Shown here piece by piece: positions 1-51,448 of a stretch of 64,000 bases of DNA (its first letter is position 1; each line of letters starts with the position of its first letter). The stretch lies in sequence record PV662128.1, one strand, 5' to 3'. The position numbers and the translations under genes were made by a program. The notes under the pieces were generated by a model that did not search any database, was not told where the DNA came from, and was given only the letters and a program-made list of their open reading frames with translations.

Positions 1-98
1 ATCTTTTTGAAAAAGAAGGCGTTGAATTAAAAGAATTTACCTTTAAACATAACGGTAAAGATCTCAGTGTCATTTTAAGTAAGGGATCGCGCGTAACG

Positions 99-1025: not shown

Positions 1026-1028
1026 ATC

Positions 1029-1634: not shown

Positions 1635-1686
1635 CGTTGAGAGGGGAGATTAAGTTCTCCCCTATTTAACCAACGAGGATAAGATC

Positions 1687-2208: not shown

Positions 2209-2210
2209 TC

Positions 2211-3551: not shown

Positions 3552-3553
3552 AC

Positions 3554-3585
3554 TTATATCCTGGGCGGATCCGCCCAGGATATAA
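3554..3585. terminator. 32-bp perfect palindrome after the ATPase gene
   Basis: TTATATCCTGGGCGGA|TCCGCCCAGGATATAA, 3 nt after the stop codon. Confidence 0.75.
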
Positions 3586-3614
3586 TCTGTTAATTTAACC
3601 TTTGGAAACGAATC

Positions 3615-4109: not shown

Positions 4110-4187
4110 ATTGTCGTTAGTCTCCATCGCATTTTAGGTGAGCTTCGCTAAACCCTATTTCTAAACCATATGCTCATTGGGTAAATT

Positions 4188-4859: not shown

Positions 4860-5735
4860 ATGAATGGCGTAAAAACTGTTCTTTCAGCAAAACAAGTCAA
4901 GAAAGATCTCGAACATTTACACGACACGTATTTGGTCAAATTAGGTGCGGTATCCGACCAGCTATTTAGCATGCAATCTTTAAAAGCTTCGCTATCTCGA
5001 TTATTTGAAACGGGTGAACTAGGTGAGGTTATCGACGATCCAAACTATTTTAGCGATGGTGTTTGTTTAGAGAAAAAAGTAATCGAGTTTAAAAACCTCT
5101 CTGGGTTTACTGCGTCGGAATTCCTTTACGATCACGACAACGGGTATTACCACATTGAGAGTAAGGTAAGGTTTTTAAAACACTTCGACATCAAACCCAA
5201 CGATGAATTAGAGTTTATTCCCAGAGTAGTTTTTGATAATCTAGGGAGACCTCATATCGTTGCTTTCGATGTTAAAGTACGCCGATCCGATGCCCTTACG
5301 ATCAACCCTGTTATGTTTAATTCTGACGGATACGCTTTTGGTAGAACCCAGGTTATAGGGATGATCTTGGGTAACGTTAAGCTGGGATATTTTCAAAAGA
5401 GATTATGGAGCCGTGAAAAACTCCTGCAAAATCTTAATCGGTTACTTCTCCTATCGCCAGGTGAAATCGGTCGTCCCGTTACAGGACGATCTAAAGAAAG
5501 ATGGCGAACCGTAGATAAGGATAATGCATGGGGTGAGCTTTTGGTATTTGAAATCAAGGATTATAATGACGAGACTTACGTTGTTGAGGGGTTAATAGAA
5601 CTCAGTGAGAAAGTTCCTCTAACCTGGCTAGTAATGAATGGAAAAGATCTTGTCTTCGCTCCGCGGGTCTCGTTTATAGATGACTTGACACATCCAACCC
5701 ATCGTTTAATCTGTCTTGATCTTATCTTGGGCTAA
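4860..5735 (+). CDS. Two tandem degenerate copies of the domain in 4420-4854
   Basis: Repeats GELGE...FIPRVV...IVAFDV and GEIGRP...FAPRVS...LICLDL. Confidence 0.5.
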   Translation: MNGVKTVLSAKQVKKDLEHLHDTYLVKLGAVSDQLFSMQSLKASLSRLFETGELGEVIDDPNYFSDGVCLEKKVIEFKNLSGFTASEFLYDHDNGYYHIESKVRFLKHFDIKPNDELEFIPRVVFDNLGRPHIVAFDVKVRRSDALTINPVMFNSDGYAFGRTQVIGMILGNVKLGYFQKRLWSREKLLQNLNRLLLLSPGEIGRPVTGRSKERWRTVDKDNAWGELLVFEIKDYNDETYVVEGLIELSEKVPLTWLVMNGKDLVFAPRVSFIDDLTHPTHRLICLDLILG

Positions 5736-14021: not shown

Positions 14022-14032
14022 GCTATAACCTT

Positions 14033-14063
14033 AAATCCAACCGCCCATTGGGCGGTTGGATTT
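14033..14063 (+). terminator. Hairpin terminator
   Basis: AAATCCAACCGCCC-att-GGGCGGTTGGATTT. Confidence 0.8.
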
Positions 14064-14106
14064 TATGCCTAACGATATTTCAACCTTCCTGACTTGAGGA
14101 ATAGCA

Positions 14107-15993: not shown

Positions 15994-16040
15994 TAACGAG
16001 GTTATCCTTGGCACCCCCAGATAATGCTTTGAGTTGATCC

Positions 16041-16077
16041 TTATTACTACTCTAGAGATAACCTAGAGTAGTAATAA
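16041..16077. repeat. Hairpin related to the ACTCCTAC family
   Basis: TTATTACTACTCTAG-agataac-CTAGAGTAGTAATAA, 15-bp stem; loop contains GATAA. Confidence 0.7.
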
Positions 16078-16154
16078 AACCGAGAATTTTATGTTTAATG
16101 GCTTTAGGGTTGGTGTTGTATCATCGCCTCCCTTATCACTTTATAAGGTGTAAA

Positions 16155-18119
16155 ATGACATTACCTACCCAAAATAGTATTCCCTCAGGGAATATTTTAG
16201 ACCAAATTTTTAATGCTGAAAAAATAGATGAAGTCGTCAACTCGGATAACGAAACCTATACGGATAGGTTTGGGGTAAAAAGAAAGACCATAACCGGGCT
16301 GTGGTCCCTGGTCAATGCCTGGTTTAACGGTTTAATAAGGTACGACGGTCAGTTATTGTTAGGTTCGCCCCAGAGTATAGAACAACTAAAACTTATCCAG
16401 GCGACCTCAGGGGTAAAAATTAATATCCTTGGGGCGTTTGGATCGGGTGACGGAGGAGCCGGGACCTGGGCATATGATGGTTCTGATATGTCAGCGCAAG
16501 TCACCACTTACCCTAAATTATTCGTACCCCCCAACACAGACCCAACCGGAAAGAAAGGGGCGTGGAAATTATGTCCTGACGGATCGGATTATTTAACCAT
16601 TCAATATGGAGTTTCGATAGGAGATAAACTCCATAATACCGAAACGCTTAATCAGTTAATGGATTACAATAAGTCGGTTTTTAATATAAAGCTTCCCCCA
16701 ACAATAGTTCAGGTTACAAAACTTTACAGTAATTATAATCCCAAGCTCGTGGGGGTGCCTGGTGTCAATAGCGAACTTTCCTCTTTACGCGTGATGGGTT
16801 CTTTAAATAACGGCACGGCTTTGGTTAGTAGGGACGCCGATTCAACAGATCCACTGCTCACTGTGGCAGGAACATCGGCTGCAAGACTAGCGGGTGTTGA
16901 TATCAGCGACCTTGCCATTATTAGTGGTGATCTTATCGATAATCGTGATTTAACGACCAATGCTGAATGGCAGGTACGGTCGTCAAGAACCGGATTACGA
17001 TTAGACTATATCGCGTCTAAAGTTAAAATTAGTAACTTGACGGTATGTGGGTTTAAGAAAGCTCATTATTTTAATGAGGTTTGGGACGGAACGATTAGGG
17101 ATTCTGCCGTCAGTATTTGTTCAGATTCCGACGGCACAGTTCCGGCTATTTTCTTAGGTTCCGAGTCCACAGACAATACCAATAATCTAACTTACGACAA
17201 CGTGAGAATAGAACACTGCCCTTATTCAGTCTATGTTGGTGCGGTGAACCATATTAGATTTGTGGCCTGTAAGGTCGAGACGAAACGTAAGGATAACGCG
17301 ACTAATTTTGTAATATCCATAGACTCCTCTGCTATTAATTACACTTTCCTAGCCTGTATGTTCGTTACAAACCCAGTTACCGAAAAACATTACCTTGACG
17401 AGCGAGGCCAAAAAGGTATTTGGATGGGGAACCACTTTACAATAGGCGGAATAACTGGACTCTTCCCTGGGGTGAGATGGATAAAAAGGGGACCAACAAA
17501 CACCAGTCATGCTAATTTTGCTTTCAATGATTTTAAAGGATGTTGGCAGGCTGATGGTACTGACGCTACCTTATATCCGATATATCTTGCGCCAGGAGAT
17601 CAGTTCGTCGGAGGAGTAGTTTCCACTCAAGACGTATACTCTATCAATAACGCTGGGACGTATAATAATTTCTCACCCACTAATCAAGGTTTAATTAGCG
17701 TCGAAGACTCAACTAGAGTCAATAACGTGACGTTTGAAACTAACAACAATACTAAAGTATTGGGTTCTGTCTTTTACGCCAGGAACGCAGGATACAATAT
17801 TTCTAATAACACGTACACGGGGGCCCCTTATTCCCTATTGGCCGGAAACACGATAGATAGTAGAACTCGAGTCTCCTCCTCAGGGGGAATAATAGATGTC
17901 TTTGATAGGAACACGGTTATCTTAAGTGACGTCACCAAAACTATCACTGGGTTTACCGGGACAACCGGAAATGAGTTCGGGGTCTTTGCGTACGCTGCGG
18001 GAGGAATAATTAAAAATAATTCAATGATCGTCACCACTGGCGGTGCCGACATTACAATGGAAATGAATAAATTTTATAAATTTAAATTGATTAACAAAAC
18101 AACTGCGGTTCAAATATAA
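16155..18119 (+). CDS. Tailspike / putative depolymerase 3 (start moved to ATG 16155)
   Basis: TAAGGTG SD then MTLPTQNSIPSG...FNAEKIDEVVNSD; GDGGAGTW domain; beta-helix-like middle. Confidence 0.85.
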   Translation: MTLPTQNSIPSGNILDQIFNAEKIDEVVNSDNETYTDRFGVKRKTITGLWSLVNAWFNGLIRYDGQLLLGSPQSIEQLKLIQATSGVKINILGAFGSGDGGAGTWAYDGSDMSAQVTTYPKLFVPPNTDPTGKKGAWKLCPDGSDYLTIQYGVSIGDKLHNTETLNQLMDYNKSVFNIKLPPTIVQVTKLYSNYNPKLVGVPGVNSELSSLRVMGSLNNGTALVSRDADSTDPLLTVAGTSAARLAGVDISDLAIISGDLIDNRDLTTNAEWQVRSSRTGLRLDYIASKVKISNLTVCGFKKAHYFNEVWDGTIRDSAVSICSDSDGTVPAIFLGSESTDNTNNLTYDNVRIEHCPYSVYVGAVNHIRFVACKVETKRKDNATNFVISIDSSAINYTFLACMFVTNPVTEKHYLDERGQKGIWMGNHFTIGGITGLFPGVRWIKRGPTNTSHANFAFNDFKGCWQADGTDATLYPIYLAPGDQFVGGVVSTQDVYSINNAGTYNNFSPTNQGLISVEDSTRVNNVTFETNNNTKVLGSVFYARNAGYNISNNTYTGAPYSLLAGNTIDSRTRVSSSGGIIDVFDRNTVILSDVTKTITGFTGTTGNEFGVFAYAAGGIIKNNSMIVTTGGADITMEMNKFYKFKLINKTTAVQI

Positions 18120-18122
18120 ATA

Positions 18123-18156
18123 CTAATCCCACCCTGTTTTCACAGGGTGGGATTAG
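18123..18156 (+). terminator. Hairpin terminator
   Basis: CTAATCCCACCCTGT-tttc-ACAGGGTGGGATTAG, 15-bp stem. Confidence 0.75.
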
Positions 18157-18230
18157 GGGATTTTATGCTGATCTAAATTCAGTAGACTTGCGCAAGTCTT
18201 TATACTACATTCTTTTAAAGGAGTAACCTC

Positions 18231-20789
18231 GTGGCTACAACTCCAACTACGGGTGATATCCCCAGCAATGCTGCGGTGGACCTCAAGTTTAACTCGGAAC
18301 AATTCGACCGAGTGATGAATTCTGACGATCTGACTTATACAGATCGTTTTGGTAAAAAACGTATTACGATGAAAGGGGTTCAGGAACTCGCCAATGGTTT
18401 CCAAGATACTTTCACGAATCTGTTGGGTTCTCCCGACGGATTTAAATTGATCGGCGGGGTGAAATCTTTTGATACCCTGAGATCGACACCAGTTAAGGCC
18501 GAAGGCCAACGTATTTTCCTCAAGTCCTATTATGAAAACGGTAATACTGGCGGTGGGATTTTCATTGGTCATATCGGGACTAAGTTAGACGATAGCGGTA
18601 CGGTAGCCCAGGGTGTTAATTTCTATTGGGAAAGATCCCTAGACGGAATAGTCCCAACAATAGAAATGTTTGGATGCCCAAATGACGCTTCTACTGACGC
18701 CGGGCCTTATATTACTAAAGCGCTTAACGTCATGGGTGAAATCTGTCTACAGAACAGAACCTACTACGTCGATTCCGCAGACATCCCGTCGAATAGCAAG
18801 ATCGTTTCTTTAGGAGGGGCAGTAATACGACCGCTCACAGGAGGTGCGTCTGCTAAGTTTAATTTGGGTTCAGGAAGAGAAAAAATAAGATTCGAGAATA
18901 TTAAATTCTCAGACCCGGCGAATCTCGTAACTAGCGAAGACGCACTTTTAATAAATGCTGAAAGTGTTACCGGTTTGACCATTACCAATTGTACTTTTGA
19001 AGGCTTAAAACAGCGCTGCGTTAGAGTCAGAAACGGATCTGGAATTAAGATTACCAATAACAAATTTAAAGGCAGTCTTCCTCATTCCCAATTAAGCGAT
19101 GAAAGATCTGCTGAGATTTATCTGGTGGACACCCTTGAACACGTTATTGTTTCTGAGAATCAGTTCTACGGGGCCGATACCGGCCTGTGGGGGTCGAGAG
19201 AAATAGCGATATTCGTTCACGCGGTGACTTCTGGAACATATTGGAATGACGTCCACATCACGAGTAATTATACCGAGAACTATCGTCGATTTGGGATAGG
19301 TGTGGGGACTCAGGATATCGGAACGCTAAATCAGTTATCAAAAAATGTGTGGATAACTGAAAATTTGATCGTTAATTCCGGACAAGAAGGGATTAAGATG
19401 AAAGCCGGTTCGATAGTCCACGTTGATAACAACACAGTGGATGGATTCGAGGGCATAATGCCCGAAGTTCCAGATTCATTAAACGGCGGCATATTCATGC
19501 AAATTAACGCCGAATCAACTTGTAACGGGAACCGAATTTACGGCAGAAATAAAAAGTTATGGTCTGGGGCGGTGACTTCCGCTACGACTACAACCGTTTC
19601 TCTCCCTACTAGTAACTGGACGACTTACACGATATCGGCGTCCGGAGGGAGTGGTGTTAGCGCGATCGTTGGGAAATACGTTTATATCAGTTCTGGAACT
19701 GGGGCGGGGCAGTGGCGTCGTATTGTGAGCTGGAGTGCCGCAACCAATATGGCTACCATCAACACCGCATGGACGACGCAGCCAGATACCACCAGTGTAA
19801 TAGATGTTTATAGTAATCCTTCTATAGGGATCAAATATCGTGGCAACAATACTGGCGTCGCCACCTGGGCTGATAGCAGGACCGCGAGATGTTTTCAGAG
19901 TGAGAACAACTATGTGGAAGGTTGCGAAGTAGGATTCGGCCTATCAGAACCCCTTTTCAATTGTCAATTTAGCTCGCTTCATGCTCAGAACTGTAGAGCT
20001 ATATTAAAAACTTATTCCGGGACATTGAAAACCACCAGGGGTATTCAGTTCTTTGGCTTAACCGGACAATACGTTGATTATCCGTCTACTGATAACTCAT
20101 CTGCGGTAACGTTTACAGATTGTAGTCAGATCGAAATACATGGTTTGAAAATATCCGGAAGTTATTACGACGGGTTACGACTTTCTAACATCGATAACTT
20201 TAAAATTTTCGGTGGGGTCATAGAAGGATGCGGGATGGGAGTCACGGGCCGTTACGGGTTAGCCATTGCTGGCGGGGTGACTAACTTTGAATCTCACGGT
20301 ATGACCTACGGCGGCGCTAACGCAGGAACGGGTCAAAGTTACGCGGCGTTTTTCCAGAACACTAATAGCGGTATTTCCTTCTTCGGGGGGAGTATGTTGG
20401 GTAACGTTACAGGGGTGTTTAACTCAGGGTCGTCTGGTGCACTATATCCCCCAAGGGATACCGTCTTTAGCGGGGTAGCCGGGGTGGGTCAGATTAAGGG
20501 TGTGACTCTCGTTGATAATGCGTCCAAAGTAATCGTCCCCGGTACTGATAAAGACACTGTTTTATTTAATACCGCGCTGACCGCGATTAGAACAGTAACT
20601 TTCTCCACGGCCTTTGTTGAAGATGGTTGTGTGTACACCATCTGTAGATCGGCCGCTGCCACGGGGAGTTTTGCTCTCAACGTAGTGACCGCGGTAGGAA
20701 CACAAGCTCTCGCAGTAGGTTCCTACCTAAGAGTTATTTACTCGAGTACGCTAGGTTGGATCCCTGTTTCCTACGGTTTATTGAGTTAA
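18231..20789 (+). CDS. Tailspike / putative depolymerase 4
   Basis: AAGGAG SD, GTG start; shared anchor; GSPDGF..GGGIF domain; beta-helix rungs (ITNCTFEG, ITNNKFKG). Confidence 0.85.
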   Translation: MATTPTTGDIPSNAAVDLKFNSEQFDRVMNSDDLTYTDRFGKKRITMKGVQELANGFQDTFTNLLGSPDGFKLIGGVKSFDTLRSTPVKAEGQRIFLKSYYENGNTGGGIFIGHIGTKLDDSGTVAQGVNFYWERSLDGIVPTIEMFGCPNDASTDAGPYITKALNVMGEICLQNRTYYVDSADIPSNSKIVSLGGAVIRPLTGGASAKFNLGSGREKIRFENIKFSDPANLVTSEDALLINAESVTGLTITNCTFEGLKQRCVRVRNGSGIKITNNKFKGSLPHSQLSDERSAEIYLVDTLEHVIVSENQFYGADTGLWGSREIAIFVHAVTSGTYWNDVHITSNYTENYRRFGIGVGTQDIGTLNQLSKNVWITENLIVNSGQEGIKMKAGSIVHVDNNTVDGFEGIMPEVPDSLNGGIFMQINAESTCNGNRIYGRNKKLWSGAVTSATTTTVSLPTSNWTTYTISASGGSGVSAIVGKYVYISSGTGAGQWRRIVSWSAATNMATINTAWTTQPDTTSVIDVYSNPSIGIKYRGNNTGVATWADSRTARCFQSENNYVEGCEVGFGLSEPLFNCQFSSLHAQNCRAILKTYSGTLKTTRGIQFFGLTGQYVDYPSTDNSSAVTFTDCSQIEIHGLKISGSYYDGLRLSNIDNFKIFGGVIEGCGMGVTGRYGLAIAGGVTNFESHGMTYGGANAGTGQSYAAFFQNTNSGISFFGGSMLGNVTGVFNSGSSGALYPPRDTVFSGVAGVGQIKGVTLVDNASKVIVPGTDKDTVLFNTALTAIRTVTFSTAFVEDGCVYTICRSAAATGSFALNVVTAVGTQALAVGSYLRVIYSSTLGWIPVSYGLLS

Positions 20790-20836
20790 TTAATCCAAGA
20801 GGGAGATCTAAATCTCCCTCTTCTTAAAGGTGAATT

Positions 20837-23800
20837 ATGACTACCCCAACTAATAACAACATTCCCAGTAATTCTGTACAGGACAGATTGTACAACGCTG
20901 AGAAATTCGACGAATTTATGAATTCGGATAACCCCAACTATACTGATCGTAAAGGAACTAAACGCTGGACACTGAACGGTATTCGACAAGCCATTGTCAA
21001 TTGGATGGACGGTTTTTCTTCTGATGTCGGTGCCGCTAACATAGGTACTGAAACTGGTCAGAATTTGTCCGACCGGTTAAGTGGATTGGGTGTTGTATTT
21101 AAATCTGTATCTGATTTTATTTACTCGCCTGTCTCACCTGATAAAATAACCGTCAGGGGGTTTTATAATGATGGTGACGGAGGAAATGGAACGTGGGTAA
21201 AAACAGGCGTTCTTGATCAGAGTAAGAAAAGCTCCCATTTACCAAATCAGGCTAAAATTTATAACTCTGTTGGGGCGGAATATGTTCTTTCTCTTGACGC
21301 CATCATCGAAATAGACGCTAAAGCAAACGGCGCTAAAGGTGTGAATAATCTCACCGATAATGAATTCGTTTGCATAAACCAAGTTTTAAATGGAATTTCC
21401 ACCGTATTTGGTTATCAATGGTGTGATTCAGGTTACAGTGTACTGACCCAAGGAAAAACCTACAAAACAATAAAAATTCTTGTGACCGCAAGCCCTTACG
21501 GGAGTTTTTACAGAATAGGTAAAGAAACTTTTAATCTTAAAGGTGGAATGTCTTTAGATTATGGTTTATCTGTAATGAGATTGTCCCCTCATCCAGATTT
21601 CACTTATAAGAAAACAGGCAAAAGAATTCACGCCATAAGTACCAAGGACTTCGTGAGTTATTTTAGAAATCAGAGTACATCGTGGGATTTGGCTTCATTT
21701 GCAAACTCCACAATATCTGGCGGTATTTTTATAGGTGATCATGCTCCAGCGGTAAGTCGTGATGACGCTACTGCTGGTTTAGGGCTTTTTATTATAAACC
21801 CTAAACACGTAAATATTTCACAAGTAGAGTGTAGAGGATTTTTAACTGGTGGGGTGTTTAGAGAGTGGAACGCTAGATTTACGAATGATAAACATATTCA
21901 TTCTGCCGCTGATTATGTTTTAGAGCGAGATGACGATAAAGATGTCCAGCAAGGTCATTTTTACGGGGTGAAATTAAATAACTGTTTATTCTCAGGTAAT
22001 AGGGATTGTGAAGTCATCAACATGTGTGATTGGTCGTCGATCGACACATGTAAAATTAATAATGAAAGGGCCTGGATTTTAGGTGTGGACGCGGTAGCCC
22101 CTAAACATTTATTGATCAACACCGGTTCTTGCTTCTCATTAACAGGAGGTGAAGTAAGTGTCTATCACGATAACTACACGTCTGCCACTTCTCCATATTA
22201 CCCCTATACTTACGCTCCTCAGAAATCAACGATTTTTGATGCTGCTAAACTTAGCGGTTATGCGGCGCACTATTCGGAGTGGAATAAATGTAAGTTTGAA
22301 ATTGATAACGTGGGGTTTACATACTCTACCGGCGATGGTGACGATCTTTCTACTACACAGCGCTATTCAGGCCTGACCATAGAACACGATACCAATTATA
22401 AACCAGATCGCAAAAACTCTTTTTTATTGCGTTTTGCTGACGGTTACTTTGGATCTTTTAGTGGGGACGATTATGCAGGATGGGTATATAACGACCCTAC
22501 TCTGGGATTTAGTAGAGGGGACGTGCCTCGAGCCATAATGAATATGACTGTCGGGAGACCGGTACATGACGATTCGGCATTTCTTCACGGAGGATACGAT
22601 TTCAAATATGGAACTTATAATGTTGGATTTTGGGGAAGTGCAGTACCCGATGTCGACTGTTTAAGAGGAACCAGAGATAAGGGTTTCTTAAATGACAATG
22701 GATTGATGTTTAATACTGGGACTTTAGTTCTTCCGGTCGCTAACCCCAGTTACGACAGCACGATCTGTATTTGGTATTACGACCATACCGGTAACTACGA
22801 TCCTAAGAATGTTAGGATGAACAGTTATAGCCCAGTCTCCACCGGTCAAGGACTTCTTTCATACATTTCCTATGCCAATAACTTGATCGACTATGGTAAT
22901 GGTTGGAAATTGATGGTCATTAGAAACCTCAGACCATTTGGTTATTCCGAAGAGAAAAGCTACCAAGGACAGTCTTCCATTTTAATCACTACCAATTCGG
23001 AAACACCTATCACTCTTAAATTAGTTAGAGCTTATAAGGGCGGTGTTCCTTTATTTCCAGCGGCATTACCCGACTATATCCCATTGACTCAAACTAATGG
23101 GGTTTGGGGAACGATGACTTCATCCACCGGAATGGATCTAAATGTGTCAAGTTTCGGTGGGGGTATTTTTAGACCTGGCGATCTGATTGATGGTTGGTAT
23201 TATCTTAAGCATGATTCCCGCTGGAATTTCATACAGGATTTAAATACTTACGGATACCCTCTTAATAGAAGATTTGTACTGACTTCAGGGTCAGCCGGTA
23301 GCTATCTTTCAACCAATACCTTTACAGGAACGGTGACTTCAAAGGGAACTGGATTTACGGAAATAGATTTCGGTGCGAACGTTAATAAGATTTTCTTAGG
23401 AATCCCGTTAAATATAAGCGGATCTACGGGTTCCGTAACCTCAGGAAAATTCAATTTAGCTTCGAGAACTATTAACCCGGACGGTACTTTCAGCACTAAA
23501 TATATAGTAGACGGTACTTTAGGTAACGTCGGAGATGTATTGACCATCGACAATAGCTTAGGTGAATATACTTTCCAGCCAATTAGAATACCGTCATTAC
23601 AAGTCACGCAATGGATAAATACAGACGGCTCTCTGACAGTTAAGGGTGTGTCTAATTTAGCAGGAACTATTTTTGCGGGGACGTCACGCCCAGATGGAGA
23701 TAATACTAGAACCTCCGGATCGTCGTCATACAGATATTCCGCTTCGTACGCTGTAAAGAGAATGTACACCGGAACACTAGGTGACTTTTACGGAGCCGGA

Positions 23801-23923
23801 TCCCCGGAGGGAGTTTTAGCGGCCTCCATAGGGTCTACTTACCGTAGAACGGATGGCGGGCCAGGAACCACCTTTTACGTAAAGGAATCCGGTACTGATA
23901 AAACCGGGTGGGTTGCCAAATAA
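20837..23923 (+). CDS. Tailspike / tail fibre 5 (1028 aa)
   Basis: Shared anchor variant; GFYNDGDGGNGTW; C-terminal GSPEGVLAASIGSTYRRTDGGPGTTFYVKESGTDKTGWVAK, a typical tailspike end. Confidence 0.85.
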   Translation: MTTPTNNNIPSNSVQDRLYNAEKFDEFMNSDNPNYTDRKGTKRWTLNGIRQAIVNWMDGFSSDVGAANIGTETGQNLSDRLSGLGVVFKSVSDFIYSPVSPDKITVRGFYNDGDGGNGTWVKTGVLDQSKKSSHLPNQAKIYNSVGAEYVLSLDAIIEIDAKANGAKGVNNLTDNEFVCINQVLNGISTVFGYQWCDSGYSVLTQGKTYKTIKILVTASPYGSFYRIGKETFNLKGGMSLDYGLSVMRLSPHPDFTYKKTGKRIHAISTKDFVSYFRNQSTSWDLASFANSTISGGIFIGDHAPAVSRDDATAGLGLFIINPKHVNISQVECRGFLTGGVFREWNARFTNDKHIHSAADYVLERDDDKDVQQGHFYGVKLNNCLFSGNRDCEVINMCDWSSIDTCKINNERAWILGVDAVAPKHLLINTGSCFSLTGGEVSVYHDNYTSATSPYYPYTYAPQKSTIFDAAKLSGYAAHYSEWNKCKFEIDNVGFTYSTGDGDDLSTTQRYSGLTIEHDTNYKPDRKNSFLLRFADGYFGSFSGDDYAGWVYNDPTLGFSRGDVPRAIMNMTVGRPVHDDSAFLHGGYDFKYGTYNVGFWGSAVPDVDCLRGTRDKGFLNDNGLMFNTGTLVLPVANPSYDSTICIWYYDHTGNYDPKNVRMNSYSPVSTGQGLLSYISYANNLIDYGNGWKLMVIRNLRPFGYSEEKSYQGQSSILITTNSETPITLKLVRAYKGGVPLFPAALPDYIPLTQTNGVWGTMTSSTGMDLNVSSFGGGIFRPGDLIDGWYYLKHDSRWNFIQDLNTYGYPLNRRFVLTSGSAGSYLSTNTFTGTVTSKGTGFTEIDFGANVNKIFLGIPLNISGSTGSVTSGKFNLASRTINPDGTFSTKYIVDGTLGNVGDVLTIDNSLGEYTFQPIRIPSLQVTQWINTDGSLTVKGVSNLAGTIFAGTSRPDGDNTRTSGSSSYRYSASYAVKRMYTGTLGDFYGAGSPEGVLAASIGSTYRRTDGGPGTTFYVKESGTDKTGWVAK

Positions 23924-38121: not shown

Positions 38122-38538
38122 ATGAAAAAGATTTGTTTAGGTTTGTTAGTGGCGATGTTTTCTTTCTCTTCCTTTGCTGAAGACTTCGTATGCAATACGT
38201 TAAACCATCTCGATAATACAAAGGGAACAACCCCCACTGAGGTTATTCCCGGAACGTATAGTTTCGACTACAGTCGATCCACGGATATCTTAACCAAGAT
38301 TGATGGTAAATCGGATGACTTCTCAACCACCACTTACGCCTTAGGCAAAGACGAGAAAGGCCTCACCATCCGCATGGGCTATAAGGGTAAGTACGCGTAC
38401 TGGTTTGGGTTTAACGGACGTACAATTGATTCGGTTATTGTTGCGAAATACAAAGATAATGTCACTCTGGATAGCTTTAAAGGTAGTGTAATATCGAGAG
38501 CTGTTGATGTGAAAATGTACACCAATTGTTCTTATTAA
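38122..38538 (+). CDS. Exported two-Cys protein (signal peptide)
   Basis: MKKICLGLLVAMFSFSSFA|EDFVCN...TNCSY. Confidence 0.75.
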   Translation: MKKICLGLLVAMFSFSSFAEDFVCNTLNHLDNTKGTTPTEVIPGTYSFDYSRSTDILTKIDGKSDDFSTTTYALGKDEKGLTIRMGYKGKYAYWFGFNGRTIDSVIVAKYKDNVTLDSFKGSVISRAVDVKMYTNCSY

Positions 38539-38541
38539 GGA

Positions 38542-39243
38542 ATGGCGATGAAAAGAAATGTGTTCGTCGAAATGCTCGACAACGGAGTGAGAATAAGAGC
38601 GCTTTCAGAAGATGCCAAAACCACACTGATCGACCACACGTTCACCACTCAATCGTTGCTGACTTCGGAGCAACTTAGATCATTAACTGCTCTCGACGAT
38701 GAGAACTGGTTAGTGCTTGATCTTTTTAAAAGATGCGTGAAATTATCGGTGCACTGGGCGGTTATTACTAAAGAGATTGTCGACGGACTCGCCGACTATA
38801 TCGGAGACCGTAAGGTGGCCGAATTGGGGCCCGGTGCGGGATATTTATTATCTTGTTTAAAGGCAAGGGGTGTCGATGTAACCGGATATGACCTGGGTAA
38901 AGAATCCAATTTCGCTAACGAGTACTTGGGTTCTAAGATTACCAGCCCCAAGAAATATCATTTATTCTCATCATACGTCAATGGAGATTACAACAAGCTT
39001 TCGTTTGATTATTACGACGTCATTCTCATGGTCTGGCCTCGCAATGCAGATAAAGCGTTACTCAATATGAAACCCGGGCAGATCCTTATTTTGATCGGGG
39101 AGCGTGACGGGTGCACCGGAGGCCCTCTTCAAGACAGGATCCTGGATGAACGCTTCGAGTTAATAGAAGAAAAATTCTTACTGGAACATTTTATTCAGTG
39201 GGATGGGACGTACGACCAAATCGATATTTATCGTAAAAATTAA
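38542..39243 (+). CDS. Class I SAM-dependent methyltransferase
   Basis: Motif I VAELGPGAGY, VTGYD, YDVILMVWP. Confidence 0.8.
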   Translation: MAMKRNVFVEMLDNGVRIRALSEDAKTTLIDHTFTTQSLLTSEQLRSLTALDDENWLVLDLFKRCVKLSVHWAVITKEIVDGLADYIGDRKVAELGPGAGYLLSCLKARGVDVTGYDLGKESNFANEYLGSKITSPKKYHLFSSYVNGDYNKLSFDYYDVILMVWPRNADKALLNMKPGQILILIGERDGCTGGPLQDRILDERFELIEEKFLLEHFIQWDGTYDQIDIYRKN

Positions 39244-39270
39244 CATCATCTTTATTTAGGGAAACACATC

Positions 39271-39726
39271 ATGTCATTACTGAAAAACATCGTCATTAAA
39301 CCTTCTTCTATTTCCGCTATCTGCGGGATCCTGACTTATAAGGATAAACCCTGCGCTTACACCAACGTCGGGTTTAACCGTAAACTCTACGGTACCGGGG
39401 AGGATTATATCCTCGATAACCAAGAAGGGATTCTTAAACTCGATCCCAACAGTCAAAGTGATTCCGATAACCTCACTAAGCTGAATGGAGTTTTTGTCAT
39501 CAAGCACATGACTGGTCTAACTGATACGTATTCCTGCGTAATCGGGGTTAAGGACGACGTTATCCTTTGCGTAGCAGATGGCAAGGGTCTTATCTGGACT
39601 CATCCGGATCATTCCACAATGACCATTCAGGACGAATGTCTCAAAGAGGTGATGACTCCCGACGGATTCGAGCAGTATAAACTGGGTCGTAAACGTCGCT
39701 TCTCCGAAGACCTGGCTTTCTTTTAA
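39271..39726 (+). CDS. Hypothetical protein
   Basis: TTTAGG-N7-ATC-ATG start. Confidence 0.75.
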   Translation: MSLLKNIVIKPSSISAICGILTYKDKPCAYTNVGFNRKLYGTGEDYILDNQEGILKLDPNSQSDSDNLTKLNGVFVIKHMTGLTDTYSCVIGVKDDVILCVADGKGLIWTHPDHSTMTIQDECLKEVMTPDGFEQYKLGRKRRFSEDLAFF

Positions 39727-39797
39727 AGGAAGCCATTTTCCCAGAAACTAAATAACGTGGTTGGGGAGGAACCTCCTCAGCCAATTAAGAGGTAGCC

Positions 39798-40190
39798 ATG
39801 ATTACTGTCGATTTAACAATGGGTTGCGTGACTCGTCTGGGTCTGATCGTCAACAGGATCCAAAATTATCCTCGTCATAAGGACCTCAAAGATTTAGCTC
39901 CGCTATTTATCTTTGATGAAACCAATTGGTTTTACCCACGTTGCGAAATAAAGTGGAATAACCCGGAAACCTTAATCACCTGGCTGGGGTTGGTGGCTGA
40001 TGAATTTCCCGAAGTCGGTGAAGAGGTCGAATTGATCGTTCGTGCAATCGATGGTAAAACGTTCGGCCGGGTCAGTGTTTTTGATTTACTCAATAACCCC
40101 GCCCACCAACACCTTCTCCTGGTTTGGGATATCCATGAGAAAAAGACAACAGTTAAACATCCCGGCGGGGACCATCCCTATTCGAAATAA
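39798..40190 (+). CDS. Hypothetical protein, paralog of 36248-36616
   Basis: RLG...DLKDLAP...WLGLV..FP..GEE..L..LLVW; GAGGT SD. Confidence 0.7.
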   Translation: MITVDLTMGCVTRLGLIVNRIQNYPRHKDLKDLAPLFIFDETNWFYPRCEIKWNNPETLITWLGLVADEFPEVGEEVELIVRAIDGKTFGRVSVFDLLNNPAHQHLLLVWDIHEKKTTVKHPGGDHPYSK

Positions 40191-40209
40191 CAAAATAAGG
40201 AGATGAGAA

Positions 40210-40542
40210 ATGGGTTTACCCTCTCGTTTCGCAGAAGAAATGTTTACCCCTATTACAGGGTATGCGTTTTCAAAGAAAATAAATCCCGGATATTTGGTCT
40301 CGTTGAAAGGGATTTCATACAAATCGGATATCTCGTTTTTAGAAAACCTCGGCGATATCGAGGAGTTCGCTAAACAGTTCATCGATCAGGATTTCCAGTT
40401 CACGCTGGGGGTCGTCGTCGGAGTGACCGATTTGGAACTCATCGTAAAACTTCGGACAGGAGACCACGTTAAGATCTCTGACATAGGTGACGGAGAAATC
40501 GTCATTACTCCGACAGTAAAAATCGCCGAGCGTTGGATATAG
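40210..40542 (+). CDS. Hypothetical protein
   Basis: 110 aa, AAGGAG SD. Confidence 0.7.
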   Translation: MGLPSRFAEEMFTPITGYAFSKKINPGYLVSLKGISYKSDISFLENLGDIEEFAKQFIDQDFQFTLGVVVGVTDLELIVKLRTGDHVKISDIGDGEIVITPTVKIAERWI

Positions 40543-40566
40543 CGCAACCTTTTAGGAATTAACATC

Positions 40567-41034
40567 ATGTCTAAATTCATCATGTACTGCGTTGCCGTAG
40601 CAATAAGTCTGCTGTCTGTTCATGTTAACGCAGCGGACAAAATGTATAACTTCGTTTGTCATAAACAAATCGTTCTCACCGGATCCGCTCACGGAGGGTT
40701 TAGCAAGAAAGAAGAGCAATACGTTGACAGCTACTTTAGTGCTAACAACACCAAAAAGACATTTTCTGTCATGAACGTTGAAACCAAGCAACCTCTCTTA
40801 GTTATCCCGTACGAGGTTTTAGTTGATTCCGTCTTTATGGTGATAGGTGGGGTATCTGGAAAATGGCAGATCGACATCATGACCAATACGTCTAAACGTG
40901 TCGATGATTTTCAATTAATCAAATACTCTCACGATGTAGATAAAAACATCATTCGTCAGAAAACCTATGGTACTTATGAGTACAATTATGTCTTGAAAGA
41001 ATGTGAAGTATTACCTAACGACTTTTTTAATTGA
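40567..41034 (+). CDS. Exported two-Cys protein (signal peptide)
   Basis: ...SLLSVHVNA|ADKMYNFVCH...LKECEV. Confidence 0.75.
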   Translation: MSKFIMYCVAVAISLLSVHVNAADKMYNFVCHKQIVLTGSAHGGFSKKEEQYVDSYFSANNTKKTFSVMNVETKQPLLVIPYEVLVDSVFMVIGGVSGKWQIDIMTNTSKRVDDFQLIKYSHDVDKNIIRQKTYGTYEYNYVLKECEVLPNDFFN

Positions 41035-41094
41035 CCCAACACTTTAATCTTTACGAATAACCACACCAAACCTAACTTTTGAAAGGAACATCCA

Positions 41095-41553
41095 ATGAAA
41101 AGCATCGTTTTAATTTTACTCTCTTTCTTTTCCGCTTCCGTATTTGCTGGCGCAATGGGAATGGTCGATCCTCTGGACGTTGTAGGTGATCGTTGCGCCC
41201 CGGGCGATATCGTCTTTTACGGTCAAACCGAAAAGGGTCATAAAGAAGTTCTCGTCTGCCGTTGGGACAATGATGTCTTTTACTCCTACGGTAAGATCGG
41301 TCAGAAACCCGAGCTGTATCTTAAAGTCAACGTTCGCGACGTAAGGGCTCAGGTTGAAGACACCGACAACACCAGCGGCGAACAAGTCATCATCAAAAAT
41401 GGTAACACGCTTTATTACGTTGGCGCGAAATCTTACTTCAACGAAGCTAAAGATGTGGGTTGGGTTAACGTTACCGATACCAACGGTAAAAAGATCGTTA
41501 ACATTCCACTGGTAGGCAGCGGAACCATAAGCGACATCCGTAACCAATTTTAA
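41095..41553 (+). CDS. Exported protein (signal peptide, two Cys)
   Basis: MKSIVLILLSFFSASVFA; C..GDIVFYGQT..GHKEVLVC...YSYG..GQKPEL. Confidence 0.75.
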   Translation: MKSIVLILLSFFSASVFAGAMGMVDPLDVVGDRCAPGDIVFYGQTEKGHKEVLVCRWDNDVFYSYGKIGQKPELYLKVNVRDVRAQVEDTDNTSGEQVIIKNGNTLYYVGAKSYFNEAKDVGWVNVTDTNGKKIVNIPLVGSGTISDIRNQF

Positions 41554-41574
41554 TTAAACGATAAAGGTATCACC

Positions 41575-41928
41575 GTGAAAAACATTTTAGGTCTCATCAT
41601 CCTGTTCTTCCTGGCAACAACCCCGGCACGGGCCCACTTGTTTGGACCGGTGGACCAAGTCAATATCCGTGGTTACGAAACGACTCTGATCAACATGCGG
41701 TTAAAATCGGATCGTAACGACTACTACGCGTTTAGCGTCGGAGACGTCACTAAGGTGGACAGTAAGGGCAATCCGGTTAAGATGTACGTGATGGCTGGCA
41801 TGGAAGCCATTTTCCCGATGACCATTAGCAACAAGTACATTAAAAACGACCACATCAAGATCTGTTCCTGGCCTCTTGATGCCCACTCGCAATTCACCGG
41901 AAAGGTATGCTTCGATGTTCGCGTATAA
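41575..41928 (+). CDS. Exported small beta protein, possibly pilus-chaperone-like
   Basis: Signal peptide ending ARA|H; C-terminal ICS...KVC disulfide pair. Confidence 0.6.
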   Translation: MKNILGLIILFFLATTPARAHLFGPVDQVNIRGYETTLINMRLKSDRNDYYAFSVGDVTKVDSKGNPVKMYVMAGMEAIFPMTISNKYIKNDHIKICSWPLDAHSQFTGKVCFDVRV

Positions 41929-42310
41929 AACACTCATCATCCTCATTGCAGCGTTTTTCGCTAACCTAGCGTTAGCCGACGCGCCCTACATGACTAACAA
42001 CACCGCCTCGTCTTCTGAACGAGTCCAGGTCGGTGATGTGAGTTGCGATTCTTCTAAACCACAGTCGACTATTAATATAGGAGCTTACGGTAACAACGGC
42101 AATCGTTACAGTTACGAAGATTCTGATAAAGGCGGGTTCGTATCCATCTCCATCCCTATCGGGGAATCTGCCGTAAAGACGGATTGCTCGCGCCTCTATG
42201 ACTTAGGCGTGAAGATGAAAGAAGTTGAATTAAAACAGCGTGAAATGGCCGTTGCTGCTGCCGAAGAAAACCTTCGGCTCCAACAGCAGCGAGCTTTAGA
42301 TTTCAAATAA
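41915..42310 (+). CDS. Exported two-Cys protein with C-terminal coiled coil (start moved to ATG 41915)
   Basis: Signal peptide ALA|D; VGDVSC...SISIPIG...TDCSRLYDLG then heptad-like tail. Confidence 0.7.
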   Translation: MFAYKTLIILIAAFFANLALADAPYMTNNTASSSERVQVGDVSCDSSKPQSTINIGAYGNNGNRYSYEDSDKGGFVSISIPIGESAVKTDCSRLYDLGVKMKEVELKQREMAVAAAEENLRLQQQRALDFK

Positions 42311-42355
42311 CCAACCTTAACGTTATACCAACCAACCCAACAGGAAAATTCCTAA

Positions 42356-42847
42356 ATGAAAAAGATCATGATCGCTATTGCTCTTCTGTCTACCACAGCC
42401 TTCGCCAACGCCGCTTCTGAGCAGGTATGGAACGCGTCTCTTACCAACAGCCAAATCACCTGCGGGATCGACTACACCGGCGGTACCCCGGTTGAAGGCG
42501 GTATTCTCACCGCTAACGAAAGCGGGACGAATACGTCCAAAGCCATTTCCTTCACCCTGATCGCGAACACGCAAAACGTCAACTGGCAGATCACCGAAGC
42601 CAAACTGGTTCAAAACACTGGCCGGTTTGATTTCAGCGATAACCTGCTGAGCGTAAACGATAAGACCAAAACGTCGGTCTACATCAACGATCAGGAATAC
42701 GCGTGGCCCGATGCCGCCCAAGCTAAATCGTTGGGTAGCAACGCTCGTGTGATCAAACTGGCGCCGAAAATCAACCTGGATCAATCGGCCTATCCAATCG
42801 GGACAACGCGCATCCAAGGGAAGATTGTTATCAACTGCATTCAGTAA
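42356..42847 (+). CDS. Exported pilin/fimbrial-subunit-like protein
   Basis: Signal peptide ANA|A; Cys near mature N-terminus and in terminal strand GKIVINCIQ; T/N/S-rich beta pattern; C-ending codons suggest high expression. Confidence 0.55.
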   Translation: MKKIMIAIALLSTTAFANAASEQVWNASLTNSQITCGIDYTGGTPVEGGILTANESGTNTSKAISFTLIANTQNVNWQITEAKLVQNTGRFDFSDNLLSVNDKTKTSVYINDQEYAWPDAAQAKSLGSNARVIKLAPKINLDQSAYPIGTTRIQGKIVINCIQ

Positions 42848-42915
42848 TAGTCATCTGCACGTCTTCAATAGGGGGAGGCACTCCCCCTATTTTTCTCCAT
42901 CTCACTTTTAGGAAA

Positions 42916-43320
42916 ATGGAAATGTCTACTATCTCTCAAAACTCAACTACTGATCTGAACGGCAAAGTGACTTTTAATAAAGGCGCTTTCCCGCAGCTGA
43001 TGACCCCAACTTTCATGATCTTCATCTGGGCCTATCAGCCTGTTATGAGCGCCATCCAGGGCTGGGTTCCAGCCATCGGTTTCATCTTCGCCTTTGTCGT
43101 CTTCCTGATCTGGTTTTGTCATGACCGTGCTTTCTTAGCTTCACAAGGTGCGTTCGTCCCTCACTGGCTCTGGTTCCTTTTCGTTCCGGTGTATATCTAT
43201 AAACGCCAAAAACGTAACGGTAATAGCCGTTGGTGGGTCGTCTTCTGGCTGATCAGTGTAATAATGGGGCTGGTGGTTTCCGCCGCCACTATGGCAGTAT
43301 TCCATCCCCAGGGTTACTGA
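42916..43320 (+). CDS. Multi-pass membrane protein
   Basis: Several hydrophobic segments; WFLFVPVYIYKR motif. Confidence 0.75.
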   Translation: MEMSTISQNSTTDLNGKVTFNKGAFPQLMTPTFMIFIWAYQPVMSAIQGWVPAIGFIFAFVVFLIWFCHDRAFLASQGAFVPHWLWFLFVPVYIYKRQKRNGNSRWWVVFWLISVIMGLVVSAATMAVFHPQGY

Positions 43321-43325
43321 TTTTA

Positions 43326-43353
43326 TTTGTGAGGCGGAATTCCGCCTCACAAA
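43326..43353. terminator. 28-bp perfect palindrome
   Basis: TTTGTGAGGCGGAA|TTCCGCCTCACAAA. Confidence 0.75.
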
Positions 43354-43395
43354 AACTCTCTTTTATTTTTTATTTATTTCTTAGGAATAATCATC

Positions 43396-44040
43396 ATGGC
43401 AACTCCGCGTAAAAAGAAACCCGCAACAAAAAACCGCATGACTTTCGAACAAAAACGTCTGTCTGAAATCATTAAGAAAGTCTATCACGAGCTCTATTTT
43501 GTCGGGGCGTCTTTTTATAAACCGACGGCGGTTAACGCCAATAAGCTCTTCTTGGGGGCGCAGGGTAAAGAAGTACATACCGCCAGGAGAATTCTATTAG
43601 ATCATTTGATCAGCCTTAAGACGAACTGGCCTTTATGGGTTGGGTGCTTCTTTAACACGCCTAATGGAATCTCTGTGGCTACTGCAGACTCCTTATGGGA
43701 AAATGAGACGATGTTATCCTTCGGGGGTCAGTTTCATAAAAGGATCGATAGCATCGTGGATGGGATTATCGAAGCCGAGGCTGATACCGATTGCACTCGG
43801 GAAACGTTGATAGGATACGGGTACTTCTTTAGCCACTGCGACATCTACAACATGTCTGGGACGGACGAACGTTTAGTAAAACTGATGCTCCCTTATATGG
43901 ACAAACACTTGGCTAAAGAAGTTAAACCGGAAGATGTTGTCATTAGTACCGACCTTTTGATTGAATCGATCGTCAAACGTGGTGGGGTGGCTAAAGATGG
44001 CAAAATAGAAGAATACATCGAGGTGTCGGAGGAGTGGTGA
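43396..44040 (+). CDS. Hypothetical protein
   Basis: 214 aa; TTAGG-N7-ATC-ATG start. Confidence 0.75.
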   Translation: MATPRKKKPATKNRMTFEQKRLSEIIKKVYHELYFVGASFYKPTAVNANKLFLGAQGKEVHTARRILLDHLISLKTNWPLWVGCFFNTPNGISVATADSLWENETMLSFGGQFHKRIDSIVDGIIEAEADTDCTRETLIGYGYFFSHCDIYNMSGTDERLVKLMLPYMDKHLAKEVKPEDVVISTDLLIESIVKRGGVAKDGKIEEYIEVSEEW

Positions 44041-44582
44041 AACGATTATACCTGTTACTCGTTTTGTTCGGATTAAGTTTCAGTAGTTTGGCCAGGGTCG
44101 ATATCGTCCTGGTCTGTAACAAAGTTGGGGAGACTAAAGGAACTGGGGTTGTTAAACCCACCCTTTACAACACCGACATCAATTATTTTATAATTTCCAA
44201 AAATAAAATCTCATTACTTAATGGGCGTTATGGCGGGGTTCTTATGGAACTGCCTTTTTTCCTTTTTCGTGATAAAGGAAAAATAGAGGGTAGTGGGACC
44301 GCTGGGTACGATAAGATCGATCTCGGTTTTACTAATGGCGACCTCGTCATAAACCTCACTAGGTTCACGAAATTCATAGCGACCCCGGATAACAAAGAGA
44401 ACAAAGTAGATAAAACGATCGAGTTCTCAGAGTGTTATATTTTAGATCGAATTATTACACCCGACGTGGAAGAAGCCGTGCCTTTCTCTGAAAGCGATAA
44501 TAGTGATGTTAAAGGCAGAAGGGGTCCCGGCCCGGCTAATCCAGGCGGTCATCCCAACGGTCCTCCGGGACCACCCCGTTAA
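44034..44582 (+). CDS. Exported two-Cys protein with Pro/Gly-rich tail
   Basis: LFGLSFSSLA|RVDIVLVCN...FSECYI; tail GPGPANPGGHPNGPPGPPR. Confidence 0.7.
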   Translation: MVKRLYLLLVLFGLSFSSLARVDIVLVCNKVGETKGTGVVKPTLYNTDINYFIISKNKISLLNGRYGGVLMELPFFLFRDKGKIEGSGTAGYDKIDLGFTNGDLVINLTRFTKFIATPDNKENKVDKTIEFSECYILDRIITPDVEEAVPFSESDNSDVKGRRGPGPANPGGHPNGPPGPPR

Positions 44583-50308: not shown

Positions 50309-51448
50309 ATGTTTGTTCTTAAGAAAGCTAAACTCCGACTCTATAAAGAGGACGTGGAGTTAGTTAATCGCACGTTTGGTTGTCGGAGATTCTTATGGAA
50401 TCAATTATTAGGGCTACACAAAGATCAATACAAGAAATGGGAGGAAGATAATGCGTTAGGGAAACCTAAAGTAACCATTTCTGCGTTTAGGGAAGAATTT
50501 AAACGTATTAAAGTCGAATATCCTTGGTTAAATGAGGTAAGCTCGGTTGCCTTATATGAAACCATTACTGATCTTTATAATGCTTTTCAGAGATTTTTTA
50601 AAGGTTTGTCCGGGTATCCTAAATTTAAGTCTAAAAGAGGCAAGCAATCTTTTCGTATCGCCTCTAGAGTTAATATGTATATAGAGGGTAATCGGATTAG
50701 ATTCCCTAAATCTAATTATTATGCCAGATTTTCTAAAAATACTGTCTTAAAAGATCCCTCTTCGTACACCGTAATTAGAGATAACGTGGGAGATTATTTT
50801 ATTTCCTTTGTAGATACCGTCGACGAGATTGAACCTGAACCAGAAAGTAAAGGTAAGTTCGTTGGGATAGACTTAGGGATTAAATCTTTAGCGGTTGTTA
50901 AACCTAGTAATGGGGAACCTTGGGAATTAATCAATCCTAAAACATATACGAAATACCAAAAACGTAGAACGACGTTATCTCGTCGTTTAATGAAAAAGAA
51001 AAAAGGGAGTAATAACCGGAACAAAGCCAGAATTAAACTGGCCAAATTAGAACGTAAAGTTGCTAATATTCGCAAAGACCTTTTACACAAATTTACGACT
51101 AAGCTGATTAAAGAAAACCAAATGATCAGTATCGAAGATTTGAATGTAAAGGGTATGGTTAAAAACCATAAGTTAGCTAAACATATTCAAGATTGTTCTT
51201 TTGGTACGATTAGAACAATGCTGGAATATAAAGCTAAGCGTTATACTAAACCGAAAGTCATCACTATCGTTAATCGATTCTTTGCAAGCACTCAACTCTG
51301 TTCTCAGTGCGGTGTTCTCCCTAAAGAGCGCATCGGACTTAAAATCAGGAACTGGACGTGTTGGAATTGCGGAACACATCACGATAGAGATGTCAATGCG
51401 GCTACGAATATCCTTAACGAAGGATGTCGTTTAACTCAAGCTTCCTAG
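50309..51448 (+). mobile_element. tnpB: IS200/IS605-family TnpB RNA-guided endonuclease; no tnpA in window
   Basis: N-terminal FGCRRFLWN; RuvC-I GIDLG, RuvC-II IEDL, Zn finger CSQC..CWNC, RuvC-III DRDVNAATNI; all three acidic residues intact. Confidence 0.95.

Follow-up and report, generated by a model that had tools for sequence, protein, structure and literature searches.

A conserved three-gene module predicted to encode exported proteins, one with a probable pilin-like fold, in Enterobacterales and Vibrio phages

Class 5 chaperone-usher fimbriae, which include the CfaB, CooA, CS17 and CS20 systems, have an usher, a two-domain chaperone of the PapD or CfaA type and a tip adhesin. Fibres of the TasA and archaeal type are strand-complemented polymers formed without an usher, and they are encoded by a small operon that includes an accessory or anchor protein. 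Phages also encode proteins for the host envelope. Llp of T5, Cor of T1, phi80 and N15, and Lom and Bor of lambda are small exported proteins or lipoproteins that act in the host envelope, and their genes often lie near receptor-binding or fibre genes. In this study, we analysed three consecutive phage genes, P1, P2 and P3 (the trio), at positions 41575–42847 of a 64,000-nucleotide (nt) stretch of sequence record PV662128.1, hereafter the window. The three genes very probably form an exported, co-functioning module. Our preferred reading, which is tentative, is that the products of the module form an envelope complex that is exported, does without an usher and includes a pilin-like subunit; the complex would be made in the infected cell and would probably alter the cell surface.

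The window comes from the 257-kb Raoultella phage VB_ZK_P1, to which the 4.1 kb around the trio are 100% identical. Klebsiella phage Miami (Miamivirus) and its relatives showed approximately 94.6% identity to this 4.1-kb region. The P1 and P2 genes overlap by 14 nt, and the P2–P3 spacing is 45 nt. Plausible ribosome-binding sites precede all three genes. The GenBank gene calls agree with these limits (VBZKP1_175–177 for P1–P3), and the program-made list of open reading frames (ORFs) gave TTG at 41876 as an alternative start of P2. A terminator is annotated in phage Miami at the position equivalent to the hairpin that follows P3 in the window (Table 1).

All three proteins begin with positive charges, followed by a hydrophobic core (maximum Kyte-Doolittle 10-mer 2.5–3.4) and an AXA-type cleavage site, the pattern of a Sec-type signal peptide. 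Exactly two cysteines are present in each mature protein (P1 C97/C112, P2 C44/C91, P3 C36/C161), and none of the six varies in the family alignments. A Sec signal peptide combined with a conserved cysteine pair is characteristic of periplasmic or outer-membrane proteins whose disulfides are made by the Dsb system. On this basis, the trio products would function in the envelope of the infected (or carrier) cell, beyond its cytoplasm, and not in the virion. An earlier note on this DNA, made from the letters alone, had described three exported genes with cysteine pairs; they proved to be a conserved unit, with Sec signals, two cysteines in each product and a gene order kept in unrelated phages. 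The motifs it had quoted were all found, namely ICS...KVC in P1 and GDVSC, SIPIG and DCSRLYDLG in P2, and so were the P3 cysteines near both mature ends. When the three proteins were compared by hhalign for paralogy, just the signal peptides aligned.

The tblastn search recovered the complete trio, with its order unchanged, in 21–24 phage records of four genera, namely Miamivirus, Eowynvirus, Maaswegvirus (the phiKp24 group, about 300 kb) and Henunavirus. The Henunavirus copy belongs to Erwinia phage pEp_SNUABM_01 (147 kb), where the trio is located among tRNA genes. The flanks of the trio differ from genus to genus, while its order and orientation are constant; the gene-neighbourhood check that had been proposed therefore showed a trio conserved together in varied surroundings. 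Exact-protein look-ups and pattern scans identified further copies on metagenomic phage contigs, including contigs of 274 kb and 360 kb, and IMG/VR contained the known isolates and one 360-kb contig, nothing more. The ratios of nonsynonymous to synonymous substitution (dN/dS) of the three genes against phage Miami were 0, 0.05 and 0.14, indicating purifying selection. The most remote full-length P3 relative (locus L015, profile E 1e-6) is still located behind P1-like and P2-like genes, and the P2 of this locus is 42% identical despite a barely recognisable P3. An Ail/Lom-family outer-membrane protein gene lies directly 3′ of this most divergent trio.

Outside phage genomes, the trio was found on a Providencia rettgeri contig (L006), in a mosaic region that also carries ParA/ParB, remnants of insertion sequences (IS) and a toxin-antitoxin pair. 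A complete-looking chaperone-usher operon (usher, PapD-like chaperone and two subunits) is located upstream on the same contig. It is separate from the trio and approximately 4.5–5 kb away, and the interval holds a TacA-type antitoxin gene, then overlapping ORFs that possibly encode the partner toxin, and IS/transposase remnants. Among the 185,579 representative bacterial genomes of GTDB, P3 was not detected and P2 was detected on just one scaffold. This 592-bp scaffold (L017) belongs to an assembly of the actinobacterium Herbiconiux daphne and is probably phage contamination. No trio match was obtained in PLSDB plasmids or in 5,426 complete E. coli genomes.

The earlier note had also mentioned a similar trio in marine phage genomes. 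This was essentially right: the divergent P2 of a metagenomic trio matched 180 Vibrio phage records, and the Vibrio module differs in gene order and in having a fourth component. The carriers include T5-like Thalassavirus and Vipunavirus, Queuovirinae, and 60–84 kb oyster-associated phages. A P3-like gene was found in 179 Vibrio phage records, nearly one-to-one with the P2-like gene. All seven Vibrio phage genomes inspected have an identical arrangement, in which a fibre-like gene is followed by P3-like (P3′), P1-like (P1′) and P2-like genes, a lipoprotein gene and a gene for a protein of approximately 70 amino acids (aa) (Table 1). Sequence comparison makes the homology between the window P2 and the Vibrio P2-like protein solid. 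The window P2 matched PHROG 37374 (E 2.8e-6), a Vibrio family of unknown function, which was the sole PHROG match of the trio; the Vibrio counterparts matched PHROG 25895, 25455 and 16916, all of unknown function. The mean identity among the seven Vibrio phages was highest for the P2-like protein (78%) and lowest for the P3-like protein (51%). In T5-like Vibrio phages the module is located just upstream of the holin and endolysin genes, and in pVco-14 and K251 g3 it lies within the late structural block. The conserved, cytoplasmic protein of approximately 70 aa is always encoded 3′ of the Vibrio lipoprotein gene and has no counterpart after the window trio. Its copy in D82 matched PHROG 27736 (function unknown), and the other copies look homologous by sequence. 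Judged by sequence and gene order, the trio is one horizontally mobile, co-inherited module present in about 200 phage genomes, Vibrio relatives included.

P3 has a signal peptide at approximately aa 1–19 and approximately 145 mature residues. Its N-terminal segment (aa 22–40) leads into C36, its body is confidently predicted to be a beta-sandwich, and C161 is located in the last strand. The AlphaFold2 model of P3, based on a 16-sequence alignment, reached a mean predicted local distance difference test (pLDDT) score of 85. The Foldseek comparison that the earlier note had suggested gave CfaB of CFA/I as the top PDB match (E 1.7e-4, probability 1.0), and the class 5 proteins CfaB, CooA, CS17 and CS20 were the nearest folds (E 1.7e-4 to 3e-2, probability 0.93–1.0). 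Further matches were the PapG pilin domain, archaeal bundling pili, TasA, Csu and type 1 rod subunits. Among viral structures, the P3 model matched best an unnamed 157-aa protein (E 1e-7), with a template modelling score (TM-score) of 0.56–0.58. P3 is like the class 5 pilins in size, in Sec export and in having a conserved N-terminal segment before the first strand. On the basis of the model, P3 probably has a pilin-like fold. The best-conserved block of P3 is residues 22–40, directly after the signal peptide, which has no regular structure in the model. A segment that is both conserved and irregular was read as an interaction surface. P3 had been called rich in T, N and S; the enrichment is mild, these residues making up 28% of the mature chain.

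By sequence, P3 is not placed among pilins. No match at threshold was found in Pfam, NCBIfam, PHROG or PADLOC, and no pilin family (Fimbrial, CS1-type, SCPU and others) was matched. The PDB profile search with P3 gave nothing relevant, and a P3 profile search of 1.84 billion representative proteins returned just 11 proteins, none of them a known pilin. The 3,534-aa repeat protein P0047 from that search was rejected as a repeat-inflated chance match. No similarity was found between P3 and the fimbrial subunit of the Providencia locus.

P1 has a signal peptide at approximately aa 1–20, cut after ARA, and a mature chain of approximately 97 aa that is predicted to be mostly beta. It contains an invariant FP motif, its cysteine pair is close to the C-terminus, and it is the fastest-evolving member of the trio. 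The layout of the trio had been compared to a chaperone plus subunit. The subunit half of this comparison is supported by the Foldseek matches of P3, whereas P1 is not detectably PapD-like. P1 gave no Pfam match and none at threshold in NCBIfam, PHROG or PADLOC, and its relatives likewise lacked matches to PapD_N and PapD_C. Profiles of P1 and P1′ aligned by hhalign with seven annotated fimbrial chaperones had probabilities of 1.1% and 3.5%, which are not significant, and the comparison of P1 with the PapD chaperone of the Providencia locus was not significant either. At the motif level P1′ is colinear with the chaperone N-domain, again without significance. An identity of P1 as a PapD-like chaperone was not supported, on these grounds (no Pfam match, hhalign 1–3.5%) and on its size, half that of a chaperone. 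PDB sequence searches with the P1, P1′ and P3′ profiles gave nothing relevant.

P2 is the best-conserved trio member at long range. Its signal peptide (approximately aa 1–21) is cut after ALA, and its mature N-terminus, with a PY-x-N-N motif, is extremely conserved. Two amphipathic strands forming a beta-hairpin region are enclosed by C44/C91. A C-terminal helix is predicted at residues 91–129 and was read as coiled-coil-like, in agreement with the coiled-coil tail described in the earlier note. P2 reached no threshold in Pfam, NCBIfam or PADLOC, and the PDB profile search with it gave nothing. The Pfam family OEP appeared below threshold in 4 of the 21 P2 sequences scanned (15.6–18.6 bits against a gathering score of 22). 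The alignments span the hairpin-plus-helix region of these four relatives (profile positions about 33–110), and the window P2 itself had no OEP match. P2 was rejected as a TolC/OEP homologue, with OEP scores below 22 and no significant sequence or fold match in PDB; at 131 aa it has a quarter of the length of a TolC protomer (~450 aa). The OEP resemblance may be a lead, and only a lead, for how P2 could sit in the outer membrane.

The earlier note had seen no usher, and this was confirmed. Nine window ORFs reach 350 aa or more; they encode an AAA ATPase, beta-helix tailspikes, TnpB or unknowns, and no Usher or PapC domain was found in them. No usher adjoins the trio in any phage locus examined, and the product of the large gene upstream of the Vibrio module lacks a signal peptide and falls within a PHROG family of fibre size. 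The class 5 fimbriae therefore differ from the trio, which has no usher, no two-domain chaperone of the PapD or CfaA type and no tip adhesin, and whose P3 is outside the pilin families, with TM-scores below 0.5 and a cysteine pair joining the first and last strands for which no counterpart was recognised in class 5 pilins. The usher-independent donor-strand fibres, namely Bacillus TasA/TapA and archaeal bundling pili, threads and cannulae, are also among the fold matches of P3. They differ in belonging to monoderm or archaeal envelopes, in showing no sequence relationship and in having no counterpart of P1 or P2. The trio would work most like a donor-strand fibre system, and it falls outside the chaperone-usher family. 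With the exported phage proteins such as Llp, Cor and Lom, the Vibrio module shares its position after a fibre-like gene and its lipoprotein, and the L015 trio is followed by the Ail/Lom gene. Each of those systems consists of a single protein, whereas the module comprises three or four proteins, one of them pilin-like; comparisons by sequence and profile showed no similarity to them, and fibre and module do not co-vary.

We speculate that P3 is a structural or binding subunit whose conserved N-terminal segment would be a beta-strand interaction element. P1 may be a small periplasmic partner that holds P3 in an assembly-competent state, chaperone-like in role and not a PapD homologue. P2 may oligomerise through its C-terminal helix, with the disulfide-stapled amphipathic hairpin sitting at the outer membrane, and in Vibrio phages the P2-like protein would act with the small outer-membrane lipoprotein. 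In this way P2 could stand in for the usher as an anchor or exit platform. Usher-free, strand-complemented assembly of this kind is possible but doubtful. By analogy with T5 Llp, Cor and lambda Lom, the most likely purpose would be to remodel the envelope or surface of the infected cell, for example to exclude further phage or DNA entry or to prevent the loss of progeny to cell debris. A role in exclusion or surface masking, suggested by this analogy, is somewhat more doubtful still. The most far-reaching form of the idea is a self-contained pathway of virulent Enterobacterales and Vibrio phages for a donor-strand-type fibre on or in the envelope of the infected cell, in which a mini chaperone (P1) and a small, oligomeric hairpin-plus-helix platform of P2 in the outer membrane, with the lipoprotein in Vibrio, would replace an 800-aa usher; we consider it unlikely.

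Several results weigh against an envelope complex with a pilin-like subunit. The TM-scores of P3 against pilins were modest (0.39–0.48), which makes the fold assignment probable and not certain. The P2 model was poor (pLDDT 58) and its fold search gave nothing significant; the search was uninformative because of the low confidence of the model. The hhalign matches of P1 with P1′ (E 0.03) and of P3 with P3′ (E 7e-4) were weak, but colinear and with the cysteines aligned, and these two links rest mainly on synteny, size and cysteine pattern. The divergence of the fibre-like protein and that of the module were uncorrelated in the seven Vibrio phages (Spearman −0.2 to 0.25), which argues against masking of the receptor of that fibre. 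PADLOC gave no match, scans of the trio and its neighbours with Pfam, NCBIfam, PHROG and PADLOC yielded no functional family, every copy of the trio is annotated just as "hypothetical protein", and no annotation bears on function. In addition, the trio matched no described superinfection-exclusion or defence family in PADLOC, the PHROG functional categories or Pfam. Limited literature searches found no description of it, and the phiKp24 structure paper is silent on these genes and on the proteome.

The high conservation of P2 also fits another explanation, in which the module is a periplasmic binder or inhibitor of a conserved envelope machine and no polymer is formed. P2 would be the warhead, possibly a TolC-type mimic, and P3 an Ig-like adaptor. 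P2 is by far the best-conserved member in the Vibrio phages and in L015, the subthreshold OEP alignments cover its hairpin-plus-helix region in 4 of 11 relatives, and OprM was among its insignificant fold matches. Against this, every OEP signal was under threshold, the PDB profile search was empty, the P2 model is unreliable and no target was identified. We regard this explanation as improbable.

A surface fibre or adhesin "moron" that makes the infected or carrying cell adhere or aggregate differently would involve the same assembly as the preferred reading, with another purpose. The pilin-like P3, the copy in the Providencia mobile region outside phages and the Ail/Lom-type gene after the L015 trio are consistent with it. 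Almost all carriers are virulent phages (jumbo and T5-like), and the searches of GTDB (bar the 592-bp scaffold), PLSDB and E. coli genomes found no trio, which makes a moron of this type another improbable explanation.

Interference with host pili, the second suggestion of the earlier note, is slightly less probable. P3 would mimic a chaperone-usher pilin, or P1 and P2 would bind host assembly factors, so that host fimbriae are capped or jammed. Klebsiella and Raoultella hosts have many chaperone-usher systems, P3 has a pilin-like fold, and the Providencia trio is close to a PapC/PapD operon. The top P3 matches are, however, of class 5 (CFA/I type) and not of the type 1 or type 3 typical of Klebsiella. 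P3 is in no pilin Pfam family and is not similar to the neighbouring Providencia fimbrial subunit, and the toxin-antitoxin pair and IS remnants separate the Providencia trio from the fimbrial operon. Vibrio and enterobacterial phages share the module, with a highly conserved P2, and this is easier to reconcile with a self-contained complex than with mimicry of host pilins, which vary.

In the Vibrio module, the lipoprotein gene overlaps the end of the P2-like gene, and the P2-like protein has a hydrophobic segment at its N-terminus, a helix at its C-terminus and cysteines in the periplasm, features that recall the two-component spanins (Rz/Rz1). As a lysis accessory, P2 and the lipoprotein would be a spanin-like pair joining the inner and outer membranes at lysis, and the T5-like copies are located upstream of holin and endolysin genes. 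P2 differs from spanins in its predicted beta content before a short helix, and it is apparently cleaved and highly conserved. The conserved AXA site, followed by the best-conserved block of the protein, suggests that P2 is released rather than membrane-anchored, and i-spanins diverge quickly, so that a protein as conserved as P2 would be an unusual one. Neither the window trio nor any enterobacterial copy has the lipoprotein or lies next to lysis genes, the Providencia copy is in a bacterial mobile region without lysis genes, and a lysis role does not account for P1 and P3. Neither a lipobox ORF within or behind the window trio nor a nearby holin or endolysin was found, and a spanin pair was rejected as the identity of the window trio (no lipoprotein, P2 AXA cleavage site, no lysis neighbourhood). 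A lysis role is very unlikely. A role as virion or fibre-associated proteins or fibre assembly factors is the least likely of all: the module directly follows the structural-looking gene of 770–865 aa in 7/7 Vibrio phages and, in pVco-14 and K251 g3, is placed within the block of late structural genes, but cleavable signal peptides and disulfide pairs place the products outside the cytoplasm, in which tailed-phage particles assemble, the trio lies amid small accessory genes in the window and in other jumbo phages, and fibre and module diverge independently.

Table 1. Features of the window and of related loci. Positions are those of the locus named; Vibrio module genes are listed in their conserved order.
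Feature	Locus	Position	Strand	Length	Remarks
P1	window	41575..41928	+	117 aa	GTG start
P2	window	41915..42310	+	131 aa	ATG start
P3	window	42356..42847	+	163 aa	
Terminator-like hairpin	window	42871..42888	+		G+C hairpin, then T run; ends transcription unit 3′ of P3
Fibre-like gene	Vibrio module			770–865 aa	heads the module; no signal peptide; PHROG 10818, fibre-sized, function unknown
P3-like (P3′)	Vibrio module			~150 aa	exported; Cys near both ends
P1-like (P1′)	Vibrio module			~135 aa	exported; C-terminal Cys pair
P2-like	Vibrio module				gene overlaps P1-like gene
Lipobox lipoprotein	Vibrio module			60–70 aa	gene overlaps end of P2-like gene
Conserved cytoplasmic protein	L022	2984–3193		~70 aa	
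Conserved cytoplasmic protein	L023	2902–3135		~70 aa	
Conserved cytoplasmic protein	L024	2972–3196		~70 aa	
Conserved cytoplasmic protein	L026 (D82)	3921–4154		~70 aa	PHROG 27736
Chaperone-usher operon	L006 (Providencia)	1–4005			upstream of trio
TacA-type antitoxin gene and overlapping ORFs	L006 (Providencia)	4916–5680			between operon and trio
Ail/Lom-family gene	L015	6615–7133			directly 3′ of trio
Region between trio and next shared gene	L002 (Miami)	5582–6762			extra gene with own terminator
Corresponding region	window	42848–42915			
Accessory region	window	38122–44582			nearly all signal-peptide ORFs of the window
Exported ORF	window	38122–38538			
Exported ORF	window	40567–41034			
Exported ORF	window	41095–41553			
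Exported ORF	window	44034–44582			
IS605-type OrfB/TnpB gene	window	50309–51448			Pfam OrfB_IS605, Cas12f1-like TNB, HTH
Two beta-helix/NosD ORFs	window	14107–20789			likely capsule depolymerase tailspikes
Run of five large ORFs	window	11982–23923		628–1028 aa	includes the tailspike pair

The G+C content at third codon positions (GC3) of P3 was 0.663, the highest of the 76 window ORFs (mean 0.442, standard deviation 0.06), and that of P1 was second (0.650). These extremes show that the compositional oddity is real. The earlier note had described a strong high-expression codon bias in P3; the unusual composition itself was confirmed, whereas its cause may be codon selection or foreign origin, since the high GC3 is compatible with either.

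The trio is located in an accessory region away from recognisable structural genes. Four further ORFs with signal peptides are found there (Table 1), and in three of them cysteines lie close to both ends of the mature protein, one at each. No family match was obtained for any of the four, and a blastp comparison of the region's seven exported proteins gave nothing significant, so that no paralogy was detected. The region looks like a "secretome island" of a jumbo phage. Phage Miami has an additional gene of 1,020 nt, with a separate terminator, between the trio terminator and the next shared gene; close relatives thus differ by an insertion or deletion just after the trio. The VB_ZK_P1 record gives "hypothetical protein" for every gene of the fetched region, and the Miami record names few neighbours and none of the trio. 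Elsewhere in the window, an IS605-type OrfB/TnpB gene and two large right-handed beta-helix/NosD ORFs were annotated. Record OR529409.1, named "Stenotrophomonas phage BUCTxx100", is approximately 95% identical to Klebsiella Miami-like phages across the region, and its host label is surprising.

Overall, an uncharacterised multi-protein envelope function is kept in approximately 200 virulent phages with sequenced genomes, whose hosts are Klebsiella, Erwinia and Vibrio, and the carriers include phage types under study for therapy and aquaculture. Lytic jumbo phages devote a gene cluster to exported proteins. If pilin-like assembly without an usher is true, it would be a minimal envelope-fibre route in Gram-negative cells and would matter for secretion biology. 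If P1 and P2 replace the usher, the module would represent a previously unknown minimal route of fibre assembly or secretion.

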